From Piromyces finnis finn (lineage: Eukaryota > Fungi > Neocallimastigomycota), in assembly GCA_002104945.1 (NCBI GenBank), contig MCFH01000025.1, positions 620,001 to 684,000 of the forward strand: a stretch of 64,000 nucleotides of DNA, in the 5' to 3' direction. Positions 19,601 to 38,548 of the stretch are shown here, one piece after another; position 1 is the stretch's first letter, and each line of letters begins with the position of its first letter. Position numbers and translations under genes: made by a program. The notes beneath the pieces were generated by a model. That model saw only the letters and a list, made by a program, of their open reading frames with translations. It searched no databases and was not told the origin of the DNA.

Positions 19601-22433
19601 CCACACATCTAGTTGTTCTTCCGTAGCAACAACTAATTCTCCATTTTTATTTTTAATTGGTTGAGCAATAAAGAAAGAATCTTTTCCAATTTTTGCAGTT
19701 TTCTTGATCCATTTCCAGGCCTTCTTAGGATTATGACTCTTCATATACTCACATCCTGTTTTAATCCAATGAAGATATTCTTGCTTCCTAAATTCATTAC
19801 ATCTTTTGTGGATGTAATCAATGAGTTTACGGTAGATTTTAATTCTTTTAATAAATTCATCTATATCATAAATTCTTTCTTTTTTAAAACTCTTATACAA
19901 CTTCATTTTGATTTTTTGAAGATTAAAAATTTGTTGTGAAATATGAAATGAAGACTTTATAACATTATTTGCTGAGGTAATACTGAGCTCGTCTGCAATT
20001 GAAAAAGCAGTTGAAGTAAACTCTTTGGAAAGTTCATCTGTAGAAACATTAGGATCGTTGGATTTTGCTGAAAGTATTTGGAATTTATTATGACTGAGAA
20101 TAGATTCCTTTTCCTCAATACATTTTAATCTATTCCATTTCAGAATTTTCTTAGGAACATTAAAGTCATTAGAAAAATCTTCCATAGGAATAATTTTACC
20201 ATTAATAAGAAGTGGCTTATGGTCTGATACAGGATAAAAATTATTTATAAATGATCCTGAGTGAATAAGATCTTTCATCTTCGAATTGATAAGAGCATGG
20301 TCAATGTCGGAAGATTGATCACCTCGAGTCCAAGAGATAGTAGACCCTCTAAGCGGAAGAATTTCCCAATCTCCTAATCCATTAGTTGATAACCAGTTGG
20401 ATAATTTTACTTTAGACATATTAAAATCACCAACAAGAATCGATGGATGGGATGAATGAGTTTGTAATCACAAGCGAACTTCTAACTTTGCATGATCAAC
20501 ATAGATGTTGTGATGACTATGAGGCATATAAACATTACCAATCGAGCATTTGAATCTATTCCAGAGACTAAAAGTATAAATAGAAATAATATACTTTCCA
20601 GAGAAGTTTTCAAGTGAGGCTTGACATGAATTGTGAAAACCTAAATATAAACCTCTCATTCCCGGAACTGATTCGTCAGCTTTCTTGAAAAAGTGTCTAT
20701 AGTTTCGCAAAGTAACACGACAAGGATAATCTGTATTCGATCCAGAACCATTACCAGTTTCTTGGAAACATAAAAATAATGGTTTGAAAATAGCTGTGAA
20801 ATAGCTAATACTATCTCTCTTTTCGTGATTCCACCCATTGGTGTTCCAACTAAGACAAAAAGAAAAGTTATCAGGCTTGTTGGATGAGGAAGAATCGTTG
20901 CTATTATTATTATTATTATTAAAGTCATCGTTATTAATGGATGATGCATCAGAGGAATAAGTAGAACTATTACTAGATGGCTGTGAAACTGAAGAACTAT
21001 CAACTATTGAACTGTTATCAGAGTTGATAGAGCTATTAGAATTAATTGTTGAATGTTGAGATTGAAATTGTGTTTGCTGTAGATCTGGAATATTTTCATG
21101 ATTGGAAACTTGTTGAAGATCTTGTTGAAGATCTAGTTGAAGATCGGATTGTTGATGAGATTGTTGAACTGATTGTTGAAATGATTGTTGAATAGAATGT
21201 TGATGTTTATTAGAAACTAAAATTTTACGTTTGAGAGTGGAAAAAGTGTATTTGTGATTCCTTCTACTACGAGCTGAAAAGGAAATTGAGGTAACTGAAA
21301 GTTTCTTCTTTAACATGTGTAAGATTTTAATACAATCTTTCGATGAACCATGAACCTTGACTAAGAAAAAGTGATCATTGAAAGTCTGAAAATATTTAAC
21401 ACTAATAACTGAATTAAATTTATCTTCTAGAATAACCTCGAGTTTTTCCCATAGCATATTTACTGACCATGATCGAATACCACGGATAAAGAAGGAGCGA
21501 ATATCATCTAAGGGGATACCATAAGACCGGGTACCACGTCTGATATAATTCTTGTCTTTAATATAAAGGACTGACATGATAATAAATTCTAATTAAAAAT
21601 ATTGAATATAAAATAAATACTAATAAAAATTATAAATATAACGTATATGGAAAAAAAAATCTGTCTCTCTCTCTCTTCTTAAAAGTACTGGATAGTACAA
21701 AAATTGTTACGATGCTTTGTTTAAAGTTTCTTTTTTTGAATTCTAGTTGTAAATTTTCTTTAAAAATTCTAGTTTTGGTTTGTTGTTAGTAAATTCGAAT
21801 CGCTTTTTGACACTAAACTTGTTTGACTTACTTTTCATTAAATATTTAAATTGGTAAAAAATTTGAATCAAGAATGTCGACACCAGAAAGCTTGTGAATA
21901 GTATTTTTACATGATGTAGAGTGAATCAGTCTCTTACAAGAAACAATACAACAATAGCTACATGAATATAAATTTTTTTTTTTTTTTTTTTTTTAACGGC
22001 ATCAAATATTTTAAACTTTATTATTAATTTAATTAAAATTATAATACATGTAATAAAAAATTAAAAAATAAAAATAAAAATAAAAAAAATATGTTTAAAT
22101 AAACACAAATGAATAAAATTTGGGTATAATGTATTCTAGTAATTTTAATTAAAGTAAGAAAGCCACTATCATACTAAAGTATAATAATTGTATTTGACTT
22201 CCAATGGGACACCGAGCCAAAGATCAAAATTTTGTCATGGAACAAAATTATGATCTCCATTGGTTGCGCTGGCCCTCCTGGCCTGTCTTACTGTTTCTTC
22301 AGCATTGACGCTCTTGGATGTTGCTTCAAACCTTTTGAACATTGTCCATTGCTGGCCAATAGCAAAAGGCATGATTTTGGTTAGAAGTTCCGCGGTTACC
22401 GTCAAGAATGGTGTTCCTTCGTTAGTATCAGAT

Positions 22434-22436
<3 letters not shown>

Positions 22437-22471
<35 letters not shown>

Positions 22472-24007
22472 GGCATCAAATATTTTAAACTTTATTATTA
22501 ATTTAATTAAAATTATAATACATGTAATATAATAATTAAAATAAAATAAAAATAAAAAAAAATATGTTTAAATAAACACAAATGAATAAAAATTGGGTAT
22601 AATGTATTCTAGTAATTTTAATTAAAGTAAGAAAGCCACTATCATTTCAACAATCCGATCTTGTTGAAGATCGGATTGTTGATGAGATTGTTGAACTGAT
22701 TGTTGAACTGATTGTTGAAATGATTGTTGAATAGAATGTTGATGTTTATTAGAAACTAAAATTTTACGTTTGAGAGTGGAAAAAGTGTATTTGTGATTCC
22801 TTCTACTACGAGCTGAAAAGGAAATTGAGGTAACTGAAAGTTTCTTCTTTAACATGTGTAAGATTTTAATACAATCTTTTGATGAACCATGAACCTTGAC
22901 TAAGAAAAAGTGATCATTGAAAGTTTGAAAATATTTAACACTAATAACTGAATTAAATTTATCTTCTAGAATAACCTCGAGTTTTTCCCATAGCATATTT
23001 ACTGACCATGATCGAATACCACGGATAAAGAAGGAGCGAATATCATCTAAGGGGATACCATAAGACCGGGTACCACGTCTGATATAATTCTTATCTTTAA
23101 TATAAAGGACTGACATGATAATAAATTCTAATTAAAAAATATTGAATATAAAATAAATACTAATAAAAATTACAAATATAACGTATATGGAAAAAAATCT
23201 GTCTCTCTCTCTCTTCTTAAAAGTACTGGATAGTACAAAAATTGTTACGATGCTTTGTTTAAAGTTTCTTTTTTTTGAATTCTAGTTGTAAATTTTCTTT
23301 AAAAATTCTAGTTTTGGTTTGTTGTTAGTAAATTCGATTCGCTTTTTGACACTAAACTTGTTTGACTTTACTTTTCATTAAATATTTAAATTGGTAAAAA
23401 ATTTGAATCAAGAATGTCGACACCAGAAAGCTTGTGAATAGTATTTTTACATGATGTAGAGTGAATCAGTCTCTTACAAGAAACAATACAACAATAGCTA
23501 CATGAATATAAAAGTACAATGCAAATGCTAAAGTTGACTACATTGGATTCTTACAAGAGAAGAGTAGTACTACATGAATACATGAATAAAAGAAAAAATA
23601 CAGCAACAAAATGTATTACTCTTCTAATTAAATACTATACAAACTTACCTGAAAAATCAAACATTCACTTATTCATCAAATACTTAAATTTGATGAATAA
23701 AATGTTTTTTAATCGCTCAGTACCATGAGCTTAGTCCTAATAATTTACCCTTGAAGACTAACCAAGCATCCATTGCGCAATGCTTGGATTTAATTCTTTC
23801 TACTCTCTCAGTACCATGAGCATGAGTAGACCCCCTTGAGAAATTACATTTATTAAATAAATGAAGGCACATTCCTAAGAGGGCACCAAGCATCCATTGC
23901 GCAATACTTGGATTTAATTTTTTCTACTCTCTCAGTACCATGAGCATGAGTAGACCCCCTTGAGAAACTACATTTATTAAATAAATGAAGGCACGTTCCC
24001 AAGAGGG
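22437..24007 (-). mobile_element. LINE copy B2, an internally deleted 1.57-kb derivative that keeps both ends, inserted in B1
   Basis: Poly(A) at 22437-22468; 13-bp TSD AGTATCAGATTGA at 22424-22436 and 24008-24020; the 3' UTR joins directly to the Gln-rich start of the ORF at about 22645. Confidence 0.9.
23762..24007 (-). repeat. Two ~124-bp tandem 5' UTR monomers of copy B2
   Basis: Units 23762-23885 and 23886-24007 (ccaagcatccattgcgcaat ... aagaggg). Confidence 0.95.
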
Positions 24008-24124
24008 AGTATCAGATTGAATCTGACGCTTACAAAGTTCTTTCCATTCCCTTGAATTGTAATTAATATTGTTAAAACTTCTTCCCCCAAGAAGGAATTT
24101 AAATATTTTACTGCACACACTAGA

Positions 24125-24170
<46 letters not shown>

Positions 24171-28942: not shown

Positions 28943-29565
28943 GATAATAAATTCTAATTAAAAAATATTGAATATAAAATAAATACTAATAAAAATTACA
29001 AATATAACGTATATGGAAAAAAATCTGTCTCTCTCTCTCTTCTTAAAAGTACTGGATAGTACAAAAATTGTTACGATGCTTTGTTTAAAGTTTCTTTTTT
29101 TTGAATTCTAGTTGTAAATTTTCTTTAAAAATTCTAGTTTTGGTTTGTTGTTAGTAAATTCGATTCGCTTTTTGACACTAAACTTGTTTGACTTTACTTT
29201 TCATTAAATATTTAAATTGGTAAAAAATTTGAATCAAGAATGTCGACACCAGAAAGCTTGTGAATAGTATTTTTACATGATGTAGAGTGAATCAGTCTCT
29301 TACAAGAAACAATACAACAATAGCTACAATGCTAAAGTTGACTACATTGGATTCTTACAAGAGAAGAGTAGTACTACATGAATACATGAATAAAAGAAAA
29401 AATACAGCAACAAAATGTATTACTCTTCTAATTAAATACTATACAAACTTACCTGAAAAATCAAACATTCACTTATTCATCAAATACTTAAATTTGATGA
29501 ATAAAATGTTTTTTAATCGCTCAGTACCATGAGCTTAGTCCTAATAATTTACCCTTGAAGACTAA

Positions 29566-29905
29566 CCAAGCATCCATTGCGCAATGCTTGGATTTAATTC
29601 TTTCTACTCTCTCAGTACCATGAGCATGAGTAGACCCCCTTGAGAAATTACATTTATTAAATAAATGAAGGCACATTCCTAAGAGGGCACCAAGCATCCA
29701 TTGCGCAATACTTGGATTTAATTCTTTCTACTCTCTCAGTACCATGAGCATGAGTAGACCCCCTTGAGAAACTACATTTATTAAATAAATGAAGGCACGT
29801 TCCCAAGAGGGGAAATTCTTTCTACTCTCTCAGTACCATGAGCATGAGTAGACCCCCTTGAGAAACTACATTTATTAAATAAATGAAGGCACGTTCCCAA
29901 GAGGG
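29566..29905 (-). repeat. Two full and one partial 5' UTR monomer of copy C
   Basis: Units 29566-29689, 29690-29811 and about 29814-29905. Confidence 0.95.
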
Positions 29906-29990
29906 CACACTAGAATAATCATACACATTAAACATGAATATAAAAATACAATGCAAATGCTAAAGTTGACTACATTGGATTCTTACAAGA

Positions 29991-29996
<6 letters not shown>

Positions 29997-30038
<42 letters not shown>

Positions 30039-31604
30039 GGCATCAAATATTTTAAACTTTATTATTAATTTAATTAAAATTATAATACATGTAATAAAAA
30101 ATTAAAAATAAATAAAAATAAAAAAAAATATGTTTAAATAAACACAAATGAATAAAAATTGGGTATAATGTATTCTAGTAATTTTAATTAAAGTAAGAAA
30201 GCCACTATCATACTAAAGTATAATAATTGTATTTGACTTCCAATGGGACACCGAGCCAAAGATCAAAATTTTGTCATGGAACAAAATTATGATCTCCATT
30301 GGTTGCGCTGGCCCTCCTGGCCTGTCTTACTGTTTCTTCAGCATTGACGCTCTTGGATGTTGCTTCAAACCTTTTTGAACATTGACCATTGCTGGCCAAT
30401 AGCAAAAGGCATGATTTTGGTTAGAAGTTCCGCGGTTACCGTCAAGAATGGTGCTCCTTCATTAGTACCAGATTGAATCTGACGCTTACAAAGTTCTTTC
30501 CATTCCCTTGAATTATAATTAATATTGTTAAAACTTCTTCCCCCAAGAAGGAATTTAAATATTTTACTGCACACACTAGAATAATCATACACATTAATAT
30601 TCACCGGATTATTAGAACTATTACTATCATTAACTAAATTACTATCTAAATTAGAATTATTATCTTCACTATTGCTATCATTATTAATATTATTATTTCT
30701 ATTACTACTATTGTTATTATTACTATTTCTATTATTACAATTACTACTATTGTTATTATTACTATTGTTATTATTATTATTGTTACTATTACTATTACTG
30801 TTATTGCTATCTCTACTGACATTATCAATTTCATTATTATTGATAGGACTATTGGAATTACGTTGACTGAAAAAATTTAATAGCTGGACTATGGAATCAT
30901 AATGTTTAATACGGATATCTCTAAATGTTGAACAATCTAATAACCAATGTTTAATACTTTGATCTCCACACTTGCAACATGGACAGTAGTTAGGACAAAC
31001 TGGATCAACAAATTTAGCAGCTTTGGCAACTCTAGCATCCAACTTATATCCGCTTCTTGCTTTCAATAGCCAGTAGAAGCCATAGGCAAACTCTAGGTAC
31101 TCATAACATAATTTAATAAAATCTTTAGTTTCAATAAATTTATTATCATCATAATATTGCGCTTTGATTGAATTCCCTTTGAGATCTTTCCAATAAAAGT
31201 TTTTAACTGCTTTAACATCTCCATGCTTCTTTAGTTTTTTTTCAAGTGTCCTACTTGATTTGCACCACGTGTATTTTCTAAATTTAGGAATGTAATTGAC
31301 AAGGTGTGAGATAATACAATTTGAGTTTTTCCATTTGTTAAAACATCTAACCTGAGCTAACGCACATTTGGCTGACAGTGGAGGAATATTCAAATCTTTT
31401 GAGATAGAGTATAAAGATATAAACGATACAGCTTTATGAACTCCGGCAACCCATCGTATTCCTTTGTTAACATGCTTCTGAGCAATCCTAGACCTAGCTT
31501 TGTTGGATCCAAGTAATGGTGCAAAGTATGAAACTCTGCTAATCACTTGTGAGTTAAGTACTAGTTTTTTGAAAGGAATAGGAATATTAGGATTTCTTAA
31601 GAAT
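29997..31604 (-). mobile_element. LINE copy D, 5'-truncated (1.6 kb), inserted in the 5' UTR of A
   Basis: Poly(A) at 29997-30035; 14-bp TSD TTACAAGAGGAGAG at 29983-29996 and 31605-31618, with TTAC also matching the element (microhomology). Both TSD copies carry GAGGAG where copies B2 and C have GAGAAG. Confidence 0.9.
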
Positions 31605-32730
31605 TTACAAGAGGAGAGTAGTACTACATGAATACATGAATAAAAGAAAAAATACAGCAACAAAATGTATTACTCTTCTAATTAAATACTATACAAACTT
31701 ACCTGAATATCAAACATTCAACTTATTCATCAAATACTTAATTCGATGAATAAAATGTTTTTTAATCGCTCAGTACCATGAGCTTAGTCCTAATAATTTT
31801 CCCTTAAAGACTAACCAAGCATCCATTGCGCAATGCTTGGATTTAATTATTATCTTCACTATTGCGAATTTACTCTTAACCTTTTTGATGGTATTACATA
31901 GATTTTGGAAATCCATAAACCACAATAAAATTCACCAATCAATAGCCATCACTACCACCTTTTTTTTTAAACACCAGATAATATTAAAACACATTTTTTT
32001 ATTTTTTTATATATATAAATTATTTTATTAAAATATATTATTTTATTATTAAAACATTTAAAAAAATAATAGCAAACTTTAAAATGGAGTTGCAACTATT
32101 ATTTTCAATCAATATGGATTAGTTTTTTTTTTTTTTTTCGTTATTAGTTTCATTAATTTTTTTTTTCTTTTTTTAAATAGGATTTCTATGTTTTCTCTTT
32201 GTTTTTAGTTGTGTGTGTGTATTTTGATTTTTTTTCATGTCTTTTAAATGAAAAATGTTTTATAATAAAATGAATATATTCATTTTTTTAAAAAAATAAT
32301 AAAAAAAATTTTCTATAATTTGTTTTTTTATATTATTTTTGGCTTGTTTGTTTTCATTTTCTAAATGTAATGATTTTAAAATAAATTAAAAAAATAATAA
32401 TAGGAATTTTGATTTCTTTTTTTTTTTTGTGTATGATCTAATTATAAAAAAAATGATTAAATTTGGATTTTTATAATACAAAAAATTTTTCTATAATTTT
32501 ATAGAACATTAATTATTTAATGTGTTGTAAAATGTTTTTTAAATTAAAAAATTAAAAAAAGAAAAATATAAATTTAATTATTTTTCTTTTTTCTTATTCT
32601 TAATCTTGGGTAAATATATAATTATTGGGTAACTTTATTCTTTTCCATGTCTAAAAAGAATAATAATTTTATATTAAAATAGATAAATTATATATATTAA
32701 AAAAGATAATAATGATTATTCGCGATTAAT

Positions 32731-34122
32731 TTAGTGGACAATTCTAGTTCTGACAACATCTTGAAGTTGAGAAAGTTCAGAGTAAACCTTTAATAATTCT
32801 TCTTCAGAGTTGACAGTAATATCAGCTTGAAGGTAAGCCATGGAACCACGAGCCTTAGAGACTTGGTTTTCAATGTTGTGAGAGTAGAGAATGTGGTTGA
32901 TAGCCTTAAGAACACCTGGAACATTCTTGTGGAAGTTTAAGATTCTGATAACATTAGTAGCAGATGGAACTTCAGTACTTGGAACTTGAGCAAAGTTAAC
33001 AGCACCAACAGTTTCACCACAGTTAATGTACTTGACAAGACGGTTAGCAACTTCAGTACCAATGTTGTATTGAGCTTCTTCAGTAGAACCACCAATGTGT
33101 GGGGTAAGGATAGTGTTTGGACAGTTTTGTAATGGGGTAATCCAACCTTCACAGTTACCCTTTGGTTCGTTGGTGTAGACATCAACAGCACAACCACCAA
33201 GGTGACCACTCTTTAAGGCTTCAACTAATGGTTCTAATTGAACAATGGTACCTCTGGAGGTGTTGATAAGACAACATCCCTTCTTCATCATAGCAATTTG
33301 TTCCTTACCAATCATACCATCAGTAGATGGAAGAGATGGAACGTGGAAGGTAATGAAATCAGAAGTCTTTAATAAAGTTTCAAGTTTGTCAACTTGGGTA
33401 GCACTACCAACTGGTGGAACCTTGTGGTAATCGTGGTAGATAACTCTGCATCCTAAAGCTTCAGCCATTTCAGAAACTTGTCTACCAATGTTACCGTAAC
33501 CAACAATACCTAAGGTACGTCCTCTGATTTCGTGACAACCCTTAGCAAATTTGTTCCAGATAGTCTTGTGCATTTCATTGTTACGGTCACCAACTCTACG
33601 ACCAACATTGAGCATAAGAGTGATAACTAATTCAGCAACGGAACGACCACTACCTCTTGGACAGTTGTAAACTGGAATACCGAGTTGAGAAGCCATTTCA
33701 AGATCGACACCATTGGTACCAATACAGAAACAACCAATAGCGATAAGGTTCTTAGCAGCAGCAAGAACCTTCTTGTTAATCTTAGTCTTAGATCTAACAC
33801 CAAGAATGTGAACATCCTTAATCTTTTCAATTAATTGTTCTTCAGAGAGAGACTTGGCACTCCATTCAATGTTGTAACCTTGAGCCTTTAAAATTTCAAC
33901 AGCAGAGTTGTTGATGTTTTCTAATAATAAAACCTTCATATCCTTGGAGGAGTTGAATGGACGGTATGGCTTTAAAGAACGGTGAGAAGAGTATTCAGCT
34001 TGCCAGAAAGTGTTAGAATCGAGTGGACCTAATCCTGGAATGTGTGGAAAACCTCCAGCATCAGAATCAACATCATTTAAACCGACTTCAGAAGCCTTTG
34101 GTAAATTTTGTGGAGTAGACAT
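32731..34122 (-). CDS. SER3: D-3-phosphoglycerate dehydrogenase (SerA / yeast Ser3-Ser33 type) with C-terminal ACT domain
   Basis: MKVLLLEN, GVRSKT, GCFCIGTN, GIVGYGNIG (NAD-binding), INTSRG, AVDVY..EP, LTPHIGGSTEEAQ, NFHKNVPGVL; intronless, with strongly biased codon use. Confidence 0.95.
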   Translation of the reverse strand: MSTPQNLPKASEVGLNDVDSDAGGFPHIPGLGPLDSNTFWQAEYSSHRSLKPYRPFNSSKDMKVLLLENINNSAVEILKAQGYNIEWSAKSLSEEQLIEKIKDVHILGVRSKTKINKKVLAAAKNLIAIGCFCIGTNGVDLEMASQLGIPVYNCPRGSGRSVAELVITLMLNVGRRVGDRNNEMHKTIWNKFAKGCHEIRGRTLGIVGYGNIGRQVSEMAEALGCRVIYHDYHKVPPVGSATQVDKLETLLKTSDFITFHVPSLPSTDGMIGKEQIAMMKKGCCLINTSRGTIVQLEPLVEALKSGHLGGCAVDVYTNEPKGNCEGWITPLQNCPNTILTPHIGGSTEEAQYNIGTEVANRLVKYINCGETVGAVNFAQVPSTEVPSATNVIRILNFHKNVPGVLKAINHILYSHNIENQVSKARGSMAYLQADITVNSEEELLKVYSELSQLQDVVRTRIVH

Positions 34123-36284
34123 ATTGGTATATTTAAACTATTATTAAAATAAATAAAAAAATTAAATAAAAATTTAATTTATTATAAAATTGAGGTTTTG
34201 CTTTTCCTTTTAAAAAATAAAAAGGTTGTTAATTAAAAAAATAAATAAAAGTAGTGTGAAGAAAAAAAAATTTTTTTTAAAGGATTTCAATATTTATTTA
34301 TATTAAAATTTTTTTATTCCAAAATTTTATTGAATAAGAATGGCATTTAAAATAAATGGCTTACATATAATAATATAATAAAAATTATATATTAGTCTAT
34401 ATATGCAATAATAAATTATTTTGAAAAATGACATTAATAAAAAATAATTATGATATCATAAAAAATTTCCTTCATAACAATTTTAAGATGCTATTTAATG
34501 AGGAAATATATTAAAAGTTTATTTTATCATATATTATAATATAATTTGATATATTATTGAATTTATTTTTAATTTATGTTACAACTACAAAATAGACTTT
34601 TTTATTAAAATATGGTAATATATAAAATCTATTGATGAAAAATCAATTTTATAAAATAAATAATAATATATATTCTGTATATATTGTAATATAAATCATT
34701 ATATATTAATAATATATAAATTAATTTATTCTTTGTTGTGATTTTTGGAAAGTAAAAATAGAAGGTTTTAGATGAAAATAAAAAAGGCAGAAGAGGAGTC
34801 AGGAAGTTGCATGAAAAGCTGGCTTTTTTTTTTTAATATGAAAAAAGCCAACTTTTATTAGGCTTATTTCTTTCATTCCTACATTAAAGACATGGCAATG
34901 AAAAAGAAAGTAATATTCAAAACTTTAGGCATACTACACCTTAATTATCATTTATTTGTATTTTTTTTTAGTAATCCCTAAAAAAAAAGATTGTGACAGA
35001 GAAACTTTGTATTAATAAATGAATAAATAAATAAACAAATAAATATTATAATAATAATTAAATGTATGAATAATTAATAATTTTAATAAATAAGAATGTC
35101 TCTTTCTATTTTAATAATAGATCATGACAAATTTAATTTGAAATCATTCACGAAACCGACGATTTTAGTTGAAATTGATCTAAAAAAGAAAGACACCCAC
35201 ACACACGCAAACACAGATATGCCTTTTTTTAAAAAAAAAAAATAAAATAAAATTCTTACTTTTTATTTTTCAAGAACAAATAAATTCATCTTTTTTCTCA
35301 CACACCTCCAACTAGCAATGATTTTTAAGGCTTTATTAAAAAGAATGTAGCATCATCCTAAAAAGAGTCATCATTCTAAAAGGAATAAATTTAGTCAAGG
35401 ACGAAGGGAAGGAAGAAAAGAAGGAAGGAGTGTGTGAAAAGGACAATAAAAATGGAAAATGTTAATAAACATACATTCATTGACATCGCGATTTCCTTTT
35501 TCCATCATCAATAAATAAATAAATAATTAATTAATAAATTAAATAAATTTATTTTAATAAATAAATGAATAAATAAATTAGTAAATAAATAAATTAATAA
35601 ATAAAAAGCTTCCTTCCGTTGATTAAAAGCAATAGTTTAATCCCAACCAAACAAAAAATTTGTAAAGGTAAATTAATGGTTTTAAAAAATTCACCATAAA
35701 AAAGGGTATTTTTGATCGGTTGATATATAAATATCCATACTATAATTGTTTTTCACTTTATAAATCATCAAAATTACCATATAAATTTATAAAGTTGCCA
35801 TAGATTGGCTATTTTTATGGTTAAATAAAAAGTTGAACAAATCAAAATCCATAAAAATATTAAAATTTTCAAGAAATTTATGTATTTATTCCATTATAAA
35901 TGCTAAAAATATATAAAAAAATTTAATTTAAAATATACAAAAATTTAATTTATATGGAAAGAAATAAATAATAAATGGAATTATTTAGATATTTTCTATA
36001 AATTTTTAATAATTTATGGAAATTTATGATTTTTTATGGTAAATTATCAATAATTTGCCATATAAAATCAAAAAGGTTCAATTTCTTACAAATCAACTAA
36101 AAAAAGTTTATATGGAAAAAGTCAAATCCACTCCTCCTACATATTAGAAAGGAAGGAAAGTAAAAGGAAGGAAAGTGAATGTCATTTTAATAAATAGGAC
36201 ATTTATAAAATAAAGACTATGAAAACAATAAAATAAAAAGTAATATAATGATAAAGAAATATAAATGTTTATTAAATTATATAA

Positions 36285-36585
<301 letters not shown>

Positions 36586-38548
36586 TATATCAAAATAGAT
36601 TGTATTTTTAGTTTTTTTATTTATATATTCATTTATATATTAGATATTAGAATGTGTATATTGGTTAATAGTGTTATGAAAGAGAGGCAGTAGTATTTAT
36701 TTTTAAAAAGGGATGTTAAAAGTAATATAAAATATTATTTTTTTTTCAATTAAAAAAACCCATTCTAAAGAAAAAGATTAAAACTCTAATAAATTGTCTT
36801 TTTAACATGATATATAATCTTTTGATTTTATTATTTTTCTAGAGTTTTAATAATAAAATAAAATACACTCTTTTTAATATTACGTTTTATTTGTTTATTT
36901 ATTATTTGTTGTTAATAAACAATGTTCCTTTTATCCATTCCTTTACTCATTTGCCTTATTTATTTATTTATTTATTTATTTATCCATTTCTTTACTCATT
37001 TACCTTATTTATTTATTTATTTATTTTTTTACCTTATTCATTTATAATTCGTTGAATTTTATTGGTTAAAATGTTATTCCTAAAAAAGGATGATACATCT
37101 TTTATAAATGAATACATAAAAAAAAAGGAAATGGCTTTTTCTTTTTCTGGATAAAATGCATTTGTTATTATTATTACTATAACGATGATGATGATTTTCT
37201 TAATTATTTATGTATTAGATTGTTTATAAAAAAATGTATATAAAAATAATAATAGTTTAATCTTTTTCTTTTATTAAAATAAGAAAGTAATGAAAAGTAT
37301 TATTCGGAATTTGAATTTTTAAAGTTTAAATTATAATAAAAAAAAAAAAAGAAAAACCTTTTATTAAAAAAAATATATATCTATTTAATTACTTTGGAAT
37401 AGATATAAAAAGTTTTTATTATTATTTCCTCATTTAAAGTATCATTATTATAATCAAAAAATTTAAAAGCAAAGTATTATAATAAATAATCTCTTATGTA
37501 AAAAAAGAAACAGAGGTTTTTTTTTTGTAATCATTATTTATTAAAACAAACAAGAATTTAAAATAATTTTTTATTACTTTTATTTGAAGTTGTTTTATTT
37601 GCATATATGGAATAATACATAATACATAGTATTAATATATATTTCTTTTTTTTTCGCAGAAAGTTGTCACACTTTAAATTTCTTATAATTTAGATTGTCT
37701 TCAACCATTTCTAAAATTAAAGCCTTTTTTTTTTTTTTTTGATCTTAAATACTACATGTTACTAATGGTATAAATATGATGATATAGAAAAAGATATTTA
37801 AAATATTTAAGACATTTGTAGAAAAAAAAAAAACCTTTTTTTTAGATTAATTCAAATATTCCTTTCTTTTTTTTTTTTTTAATAAAATCATTCATTACGT
37901 TTGGAGTTAATTCATCCTTTTCCTTTTTTTCCTTCAAAATGAATTTTATTTTCTATTAAGTTTACATATATTAACAATATATTCTAATATATTATTTAAT
38001 TTAATGATCTAATAGATTAAATTATACCAAAAAAAGGTAAATGCTGGCAGATGTTAAAAATGATTTAATAATAAAAACTTCATTCTTATTTATTATTAGT
38101 TTATCATTGACGAATGAAATTTAAGCAAATGTTGATTTCACGTCACCAGAAAAAATGGCCAGAAAAAAAGAAACAACAACGACAATAAGGAATTAGTTTA
38201 GGAAATAAAATGGAAATGAAAATGAGAATGGCATTTATTATTCAATGGAAATGACCATCTTTTTCTAAAAAAAAAAAAAAAAAAATATATTTATATATCT
38301 TTTAACTAAAAAAAGAAAAACACTTTTTAATAAAAGTTGTAACAAAGCTTTAATATTTTTAATTAAAATTGGCATTTAAATATTATATATTGGAATATAA
38401 TGAAAATAAATGTTTTAATTTAATATATAATAAATGAAAATTTAATTAAAATAATTTATTAAAAAAAAAAAAGGAAAAGTCGATGAAACGTTGAAATGAT
38501 GATGAGAAATTGATGAATAAAAGAAAAGAAACCGGCAGCAACAACAAT

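Follow-up and report, generated by a model that had tools for sequence, protein, structure and literature searches.

A nucleotide-exact 5′ end and a folded tandem leader in a young LINE family of Piromyces finnis

The RNA of a young non-LTR retrotransposon family of the fungus Piromyces finnis has a single exact 5′ end, the first C of CCCTCTTGGG (hereafter C1), and in the minimum-energy model this base is also the first base of a GC-clamped terminal stem (SL1), directly followed by a second hairpin (SL2) and then by a third (SL3). We analysed a stretch of 64,000 nucleotides (the window; contig MCFH01000025.1, positions 620,001 to 684,000), where the 124-nt units lying at 29566-29905 make up the 5′ leader of an APE-type poly(A) LINE, young and ~5.8 kb long. 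An initial annotation had proposed that these units form either a promoter array or a self-cleaving RNA. The defined start site that it also inferred is borne out here, since the RNA 5′ end is fixed to the nucleotide, with the same C in 47 of 52 flanks and with abutting target-site duplications. The extra units, on the other hand, are better explained as products of template jumping.

The LINE and its exact 5′ end

The window is very AT-rich, and at ~16.8-31.9 kb its minus strand carries several copies of one poly(A) non-LTR retrotransposon in the same orientation. Copy C, which bears the leader studied here, spans 29905 to 24128 and has a 5′ UTR of 963 nt (Table 1); the first ~60 nt of the non-repeated remainder of this UTR resemble a decayed unit retaining GCTCATGGTACTGAGC. 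Its protein matches RVT_1 (E 1e-35) and, weakly, Exo_endo_phos (E 0.0015; a match to this domain is also on record for the relatives) and zf-RVT, and its best solved relative is human L1 ORF2p (E 1.6e-33). With a reverse transcriptase, an N-terminal APE domain, a poly(A) tail and target-site duplications of 12-13 bp, the element is an APE-type (L1-like) LINE. More than 111 places in the genome match the N-terminal 369 aa at 99-100% identity, most of them within an open frame of ~1512 aa, so that the family must be young and very active. The genome also holds more than 1000 candidate 3′ ends, and at G000:C1:1538124-1540951 sequence matching the 3′ UTR of the LINE is repeated with a spacing of 942-943 nt, which may represent a tandem array of a short derivative sharing the LINE 3′ end.

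Two internally deleted copies in the window, D (30003-31850) and B2 (22437-24007), retain the leader and the 3′ end. Copy B2 may have been inserted as an already deleted RNA, because it has a 13-bp target-site duplication and starts exactly at C1; its deletion junction, unique among the 40 places scored, gives no evidence of a mobilised short derivative. Outside the nest, the window contains a long array with an 8-bp period at 36178-36668, for which the repeat finder gives a 255-nt reference in 57 overlapping copies. Same-orientation stacks of one family are also known from the self-nesting LINEs Zepp and Cnl1; such nesting concerns landing sites and is distinct from both the exact 5′ end and the fold.

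Table 1. Features of the LINE nest and the adjoining host gene in the window
Feature	Position	Strand	Remarks
Host gene, D-2-hydroxyacid / 3-phosphoglycerate dehydrogenase type	32731..34122	-	co-oriented with the LINE
Copy C target-site duplication TATTCTAGTGTG, 5′ copy	29906..29917	-	adjoins C1 directly
Copy C, 5′-most unit, 3′-truncated	29812..29905	-	92 templated nt + TC; C1 = 29905; SL1 29905-29853, SL2 29852-29821
Copy C, monomer M1, 124 nt	29688..29811	-	SL1 29811-29759, SL2 29758-29727, SL3 29715-29690
Copy C, monomer M2	29566..29687	-	relative to M1: G8A, C13T, G40A, T102C
Copy C, non-repeated remainder of 5′ UTR	28943..29565	-	
Copy C, single ORF, 1511 aa	24407..28942	-	RT, weak APE endonuclease match, C-terminal zinc motif
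Copy C, poly(A) tail, 40 nt	24128..24167	-	
Copy C target-site duplication TATTCTAGTGTG, 3′ copy	24116..24127	-	after poly(A)
Copy B2 (internally deleted), M1 + M2	23761..24007	-	C1 = 24007
Copy B2 target-site duplication TCAATCTGATACT	24008-24020 and 22424-22436		13 bp
Copy B2, poly(A)	22437-22468		

On the minus strand, copy C (29905), the internal junction within copy C (29811) and copy B2 (24007) all open with CCCTCTTGGGAAC at the same C, as the initial annotation had noticed. The target-site duplications of both in-window copies, C and B2, abut C1 with no untemplated base between them, and since the 94-nt partial unit of copy C sits inside the target-site duplication of that copy, this unit belongs to the inserted DNA. 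To see how general this end is, we gathered 60 genomic loci by an array search and by a second, unbiased search with the N-terminus of the ORF. Scattered 5′ ends in other copies would have spoken against a defined start, but the element began at C1 in 47 of the 52 independent flanks, while three of the others had T as their first base and one each had G and A. Nothing upstream of the start is conserved in these 52 flanks. The base at -1 was T in 19, A in 15, G in 12 and C in 6 of them, and 5 of the G come from truncated monomers; once such monomer-derived cases were removed, an extra G before C1, which would be a cap signature, was not enriched. The sample chosen by the ORF only (L031-L060; 29 usable copies, one more running off its contig) gave the same picture, with an exact start at the C of CCCTCTTGGGAAC in 22-23 of 29 copies: 20 copies with two monomers and 2 with a single monomer all started exactly at C1, one further start lay behind a 5′ UTR fragment, and the remaining 6 were ordinary 5′ truncations.

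Some starts are preceded by short stutters such as CCCTCTTA or CCCTCTTGGGAAAT. In ~20 copies a short sense fragment of the same element lies directly 5′ of C1; these fragments measure 25-345 nt, derive from any part of the element and have host DNA farther upstream (L005, L014, L018, L020, L024, L035 and L039; further such loci are L040, L045, L050, L052, L054 and L055). They are either nests in 5′-truncated older copies or chimeras made by template jumping in a single event. Inside the window, the cases of this kind are true nests with target-site duplications. In a metagenome contig (L088:1-73), an element of a related family (F3, see below) is found within the 5′ UTR of a LINE from another family (L078/L074 type), immediately behind a poly(A) run, and hence nesting across families also occurs there.

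A leader fold kept in related families

In the predicted minimum-energy fold of the monomer, SL1 is a 12-bp stem that runs from nt 1 to nt 53, contains two G-U pairs and encloses an inner 7-bp hairpin with a 3-nt loop. SL2 (nt 54-85, loop UGGUAC) follows SL1 with no linker, and SL3 occupies nt 97-122 with the loop UGCGCAAUGG. All the stems described in the initial annotation were recovered in this fold, namely the 12-bp stem with its two G-U pairs, TCTACTC/GAGTAGA around the loop TGGTAC, and CCAAGCAT/ATGCTTGG. The monomer folds at -43.4 kcal/mol (z = -4.7), with none of 200 shuffles as stable, compared with -29 kcal/mol for the antisense strand, in agreement with the earlier claim of a structured RNA on the sense strand.

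We then looked for the same organization in relatives. The first 500 aa served as query for a word search, which yielded 21 LINE proteins with 39-67% identity from rumen-type metagenomes and draft genomes, and the leaders of several families were taken from the contigs of those 21 proteins and from 24 loci of a metagenome scan. For F1 (the family of the window), F2, F3 and F5, the 5′ end was set independently as the point at which copies diverge exactly. In all four, a C-run start opens a terminal stem of 8-12 bp at nt 1 or 2: F2 (L062, L071) has CCCCTCCGG paired with CTGGAGGG, F3 (L061, L067, L087, L088) has CCCCTAGCA paired with TGCTAGGGG, and F5 (L089, L090, L074) has CCCCGATGAAGA paired with TCTTCATC-N-GGGG. 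Stems of comparable quality were found in 4.8% of 1650 random 90-nt windows from the same loci, and among 216 CCCY-starting windows in the related loci only 8 had one, 7 of which are the inferred starts. The outer C-G pairs of the stem are constant and its inner (distal) half differs from family to family with the pairing kept, while the partner of the first paired base lies anywhere from nt 34 to nt 72, at a spacing that also differs by family. Loci L064 and L079 show the same plan, with starts that were chosen by eye.

The terminal stem is therefore kept, with different sequences, in at least four families whose proteins are 40-46% identical, which supports its covariation across related LINE families. 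The other two hairpins covary as well, in this case between F1 and F2: the F2 protein is ~41% identical to that of F1, and SL2 with its GGTAC loop and SL3 with its loop GCGCAATG are common to both, F2 having GGUAC(G) and GCGCAAUG in the two loops on entirely different stems. Cross-family MAFFT/RNAalifold alignments were too poor for formal pair counts, and within F3 there was almost no covariation. All leaders outfold their shuffles (z -2.1 to -5.2), and the sense strand was the more stable one every time. The conservation of the stem with changed sequence, together with the stability of the sense strand, indicates that the conserved object is the fold of the sense RNA, whose first helix begins at the first base of the RNA.

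The SL2-loop GUAC (window 29821-29852) and the SL3-loop UGCGCA, part of ATTGCGCAAT (window 29690-29715), are both palindromic and kept between F1 and F2 (L062:186-242); in L071, GUAC has become GUGC, which is still self-complementary through G-U pairs. These conserved loop palindromes could serve loop-loop RNA pairing or could form a bZIP-type DNA site. A candidate pseudoknot of 5 bp between the SL1 interior and the SL2 loop can be drawn in F1, F2, F3 and F7 (GUGCC/GGUAC, CCGUA/UACGG, GUACU/AGUAC and CUAGG/CCUAG, respectively), but permutation of the loops gave it no support (p 0.02-0.43 per family).

Tandem units as probable products of template jumping

The canonical leader consists of M1 and M2. 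TRF reports the 124-nt unit twice at 29565-29811 and again twice at 23761-24007; before copy C it also detects a unit of 94 nt (29720-29905). The number of units varies from one to six between copies, as had been proposed from the window. Every extra unit restarts exactly at C1 and has its 3′ end cut short, the cut points being nt 32, 45, 64, 65, 67, 68, 86, 89, 92 and 95, with 0-4 added bases; the joint between M1 and M2 is of the same form, templated to ~nt 123 and then followed by G. Most of the entry points fall around the loop of SL2 or within the unpaired linker that follows this hairpin. M2 is almost never used as a 5′ end. It carries G8A, which makes its SL1 less stable (-14.6 vs -20.2 kcal/mol in M1), and M2 of a sister subfamily carries G10A instead; both changes are in the 5′ strand of SL1. 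An array of 124-90-124 nt with an identical joint occurs at the independent loci L004, L005 and L006, indicating that complex arrays are inherited. A separate family provides a parallel: L090 has its own leader unit of 136 nt, unrelated in sequence, which is tandem at L090:1-191 with the junction at its own CCCC start. At L089, a 49-nt duplication lies within the terminal stem.

Because the donor is fixed at C1, the acceptors vary, untemplated bases are present at the joints and L090 shows the same behaviour, we infer that the arrays are by-products of template jumping and not a selected promoter array. Both the single exact RNA 5′ end and the jumps that start from it are well supported. In such an event, the reverse transcriptase would reach the RNA's 5′ end, add a few bases and resume within a LINE RNA, in most cases where its leader is unpaired. 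The comparison made in the initial annotation with the promoter monomers of rodent L1 thus holds in part of the form, since tandem 5′ UTR units in copy-variable number are found there and in the A-module of Dictyostelium TRE5-A as well, but it does not extend to the ends. In rodent L1, the position within the monomer at which a copy ends is variable, whereas 47 of the 52 flanks here share the same C and position and the other five differ in the first base only; moreover, the units here restart at one base, and the extra ones are 3′-truncated with untemplated bases, for which template jumping is the better fit.

One could also suppose that the units have no function of their own, being products of slippage or recombination, and that their palindromes arose by chance in a GC-richer patch of an AT-rich genome. 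The variation within the family is indeed too small to show selection, and the pseudoknot test was negative. However, the terminal stem has been kept through changes of sequence, hairpins 2 and 3 changed in a concerted manner between F1 and F2, and the junction donors are exact to the base. Stem conservation and exact junctions largely refute this reading, which we regard as highly improbable.

How the 5′ end may be made

The genomic position of the LINE bears on how its 5′ end could arise. For 19 independent, non-nested insertions (from L002-L030) we examined the longest ORF within 1.5 kb of upstream flank, and at 19 of 19 usable sites this ORF is co-oriented with the LINE and has its stop codon 466-941 nt before C1. 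In most cases the ORF extends beyond the outer limit of the flank, and all ten upstream ORFs that were scanned contained Pfam domains, mostly matching the C-terminal end of the profile. The genes include phosphoglycerate kinase (PGK), class-II aldolase, aconitase, zinc ADH, GH1 and several dockerin (CBM10) proteins; several of these kinds, glycolytic or cellulosome-type, are typically highly expressed. In the window, ~880 nt separate the stop codon of the co-oriented dehydrogenase gene (Table 1) from the point at which the LINE nest begins (~31850). The pattern was absent in the few usable flanks of the related families, and the position past genes could reflect the choice of integration site and not the mode of expression.

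We lean towards a 5′ end that is cut out of read-through transcripts, a reading to which we give a little less than an even chance on the sequence features listed here. Transcription would read through from an upstream co-oriented gene or LINE copy into the LINE, the transcript would be cut at the foot of SL1, either by self-cleavage or by a host nuclease guided by the fold, and the stable fold would then shield the uncapped 5′ end, following the logic of R2 in rDNA. What keeps this model plausible is that copies lie just 3′ of co-oriented genes, several of them of kinds typically highly expressed. It is favoured because the element, in every case co-oriented, follows closely on a gene or on the poly(A) of another copy, because the RNA ends in a pyrimidine where a conserved helix has its foot, whatever base stands at -1, because the variable spacing of the stem strands suits RNA pairing and not a promoter element at fixed distance, and because cap-dependent loading would be hampered by 12 bp of stem right at the end.

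The self-cleaving variant of this model is rather doubtful, and we likewise consider it unlikely, though worth stating, that SL1-SL2(-SL3) constitutes a new class of 5′-end-making RNA, a ribozyme or a nuclease-directing fold, that frees the LINE from read-through RNA. The geometry is compatible with an HDV-like cut 5′ of the first helix, in that the exact end is at the foot of a helix and the flanks are unrelated. Counting against cleavage, no known ribozyme class fits and no unpaired core is shared, a conserved one common to the families not having been found. Since internal units identical to the first have been transmitted intact (L004, L005, L006), any cleavage would have to be inefficient inside arrays.

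The searches for known classes covered several candidates. The initial annotation could fit neither an HDV nor a hammerhead consensus and proposed an Infernal search against Rfam; cmscan at E up to 10 over 29200-30000 accordingly found no ribozyme or other Rfam family, and E up to 5 at 11 related loci likewise found none, with only chance miRNA and snoRNA matches in both cases. No Rfam model of hammerhead, twister, twister-sister, hatchet, pistol or hairpin ribozymes matched, and there is no linker between SL1 and SL2 to hold a hammerhead core. An HDV-type double pseudoknot, sought by eye in F1-F3, was rejected for want of a P2 complement after SL2 and of a P1.1, and the HDV P3 of 3 bp has no counterpart in the inner hairpin, which has 7 bp and a 3-nt loop. 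An xrRNA was rejected as well (no Rfam match and no significant ring-forming pseudoknot), and ARAGORN finds no tRNA-like processing signal in the window.

The main rival is an internal Pol II promoter, which we hold to be possible, if with slightly less confidence than a cut-out end, and which is likewise judged from sequence. Here the leader DNA would start the RNA at C1, with the C-run and the GGGRA at +8 to +13 serving as initiator and GGTAC and TTGCGCAA as factor sites, the RNA fold would serve stability, RNP assembly and translation, and extra units may add strength. Drosophila jockey, I and F and Dictyostelium TRE5-A are precedents for promoters of this kind. Such a promoter explains equally well that the start is exact whatever the upstream sequence. 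The C-run followed by GGGRA at these positions recurs across families, and this conserved start motif could act in the DNA as an initiator; a palindromic bZIP-like site is also kept between F1 and F2, ATTGCGCAAT resembling the palindrome of C/EBP-type bZIP sites. Also in its favour, the two-monomer form predominates in young copies, and M2, changed at +8 or +10, is rarely a start. On the other hand, initiation on C with no preference for the base at -1 would be unusual for Pol II, the stem's 3′ strand is located 26-72 nt downstream, the distance varying by family, which fits pairing and not a promoter element at a fixed place, and the G-U pairs and the asymmetry in energy point to the sense RNA. 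A 12-bp stem at the cap would in general hinder cap-dependent translation, and an element with a promoter of its own would need no strict co-orientation behind genes.

By analogy with the flavivirus xrRNAs, the end might instead mark the stop of an exonuclease. After cleavage at the upstream poly(A) site, a ‘torpedo’ nuclease (Rat1/Xrn) would trim the read-through RNA and halt at the SL1-SL2 fold, leaving a 5′-monophosphate while the polymerase finishes the LINE. The copies lie where the termination zones of expressed genes are expected, in an array it is in every case the first unit that bears the end, identical internal units being kept, and the fold is compact and stable. However, Xrn-type enzymes in general need a few single-stranded nucleotides, which predicts an overhang derived from the flank, whereas the stem begins right at the 5′ end or within 1-2 nt of it and the target-site duplications abut C1; in addition, no xrRNA family matches and the candidate pseudoknot is not significant. 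We therefore consider this route quite improbable.

Returning to the cut-out end, the closest logic is that of R2, whose stable 5′ fold aids survival of the template (PMC3774820, PMC11331408). As with the HDV-like ribozymes of R2, and also of RTE and Baggins, the RNA here is structured from its first nucleotide and has its 5′ end at the foot of the first helix, and as with R2 the LINE is co-oriented with a host transcription unit. Unlike R2, there is no double pseudoknot, P2 partner or Rfam HDV-type match here, the single rDNA site is replaced by the region past many protein-coding genes, and cleavage is putative. In trypanosomatids, the 5′ module of L1Tc/NARTc (Pr77 and L1TcRz) is an internal promoter and a ribozyme at once (PMC3383444, PMC3185411, PMC4035085), and it would be the best functional analogue if the promoter and cleavage readings are both partly true. 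Like it, the present leader is a short 5′-terminal module common to related retroelements that defines +1; unlike it, a 77-nt HDV-like module of conserved sequence, the leader has family-specific stem sequences and no HDV fold. In Schistosoma Perere-3, a 5′ twister-variant ribozyme frees the LINE from its co-transcript (PMC8501958). There the target-site duplication supplies the 5′ strand of P1, whereas the flank plays no part here, and no twister model matches.

To our knowledge, the route by which a LINE obtains a complete and exact 5′ end is known in few lineages, through internal promoters or HDV-like and twister ribozymes. One very active fungal LINE clade here combines, within a short leader module of ~85-125 nt, a base-exact start and a covarying 5′ fold that is not catalogued, together with frequent template jumps that build arrays and a strict position past co-oriented genes. 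The jumps suggest one concrete route by which tandem 5′ monomers can arise. If the promoter reading is true, the leader would combine a conserved RNA fold with an internal promoter that, unusually, initiates on C. If cleavage is true, the leader would represent a ribozyme or processing signal of a new kind, and its LINE would be the second, independent example of such an element living on a host transcript, which would extend the strategy of R2 from rDNA to ordinary Pol II genes.
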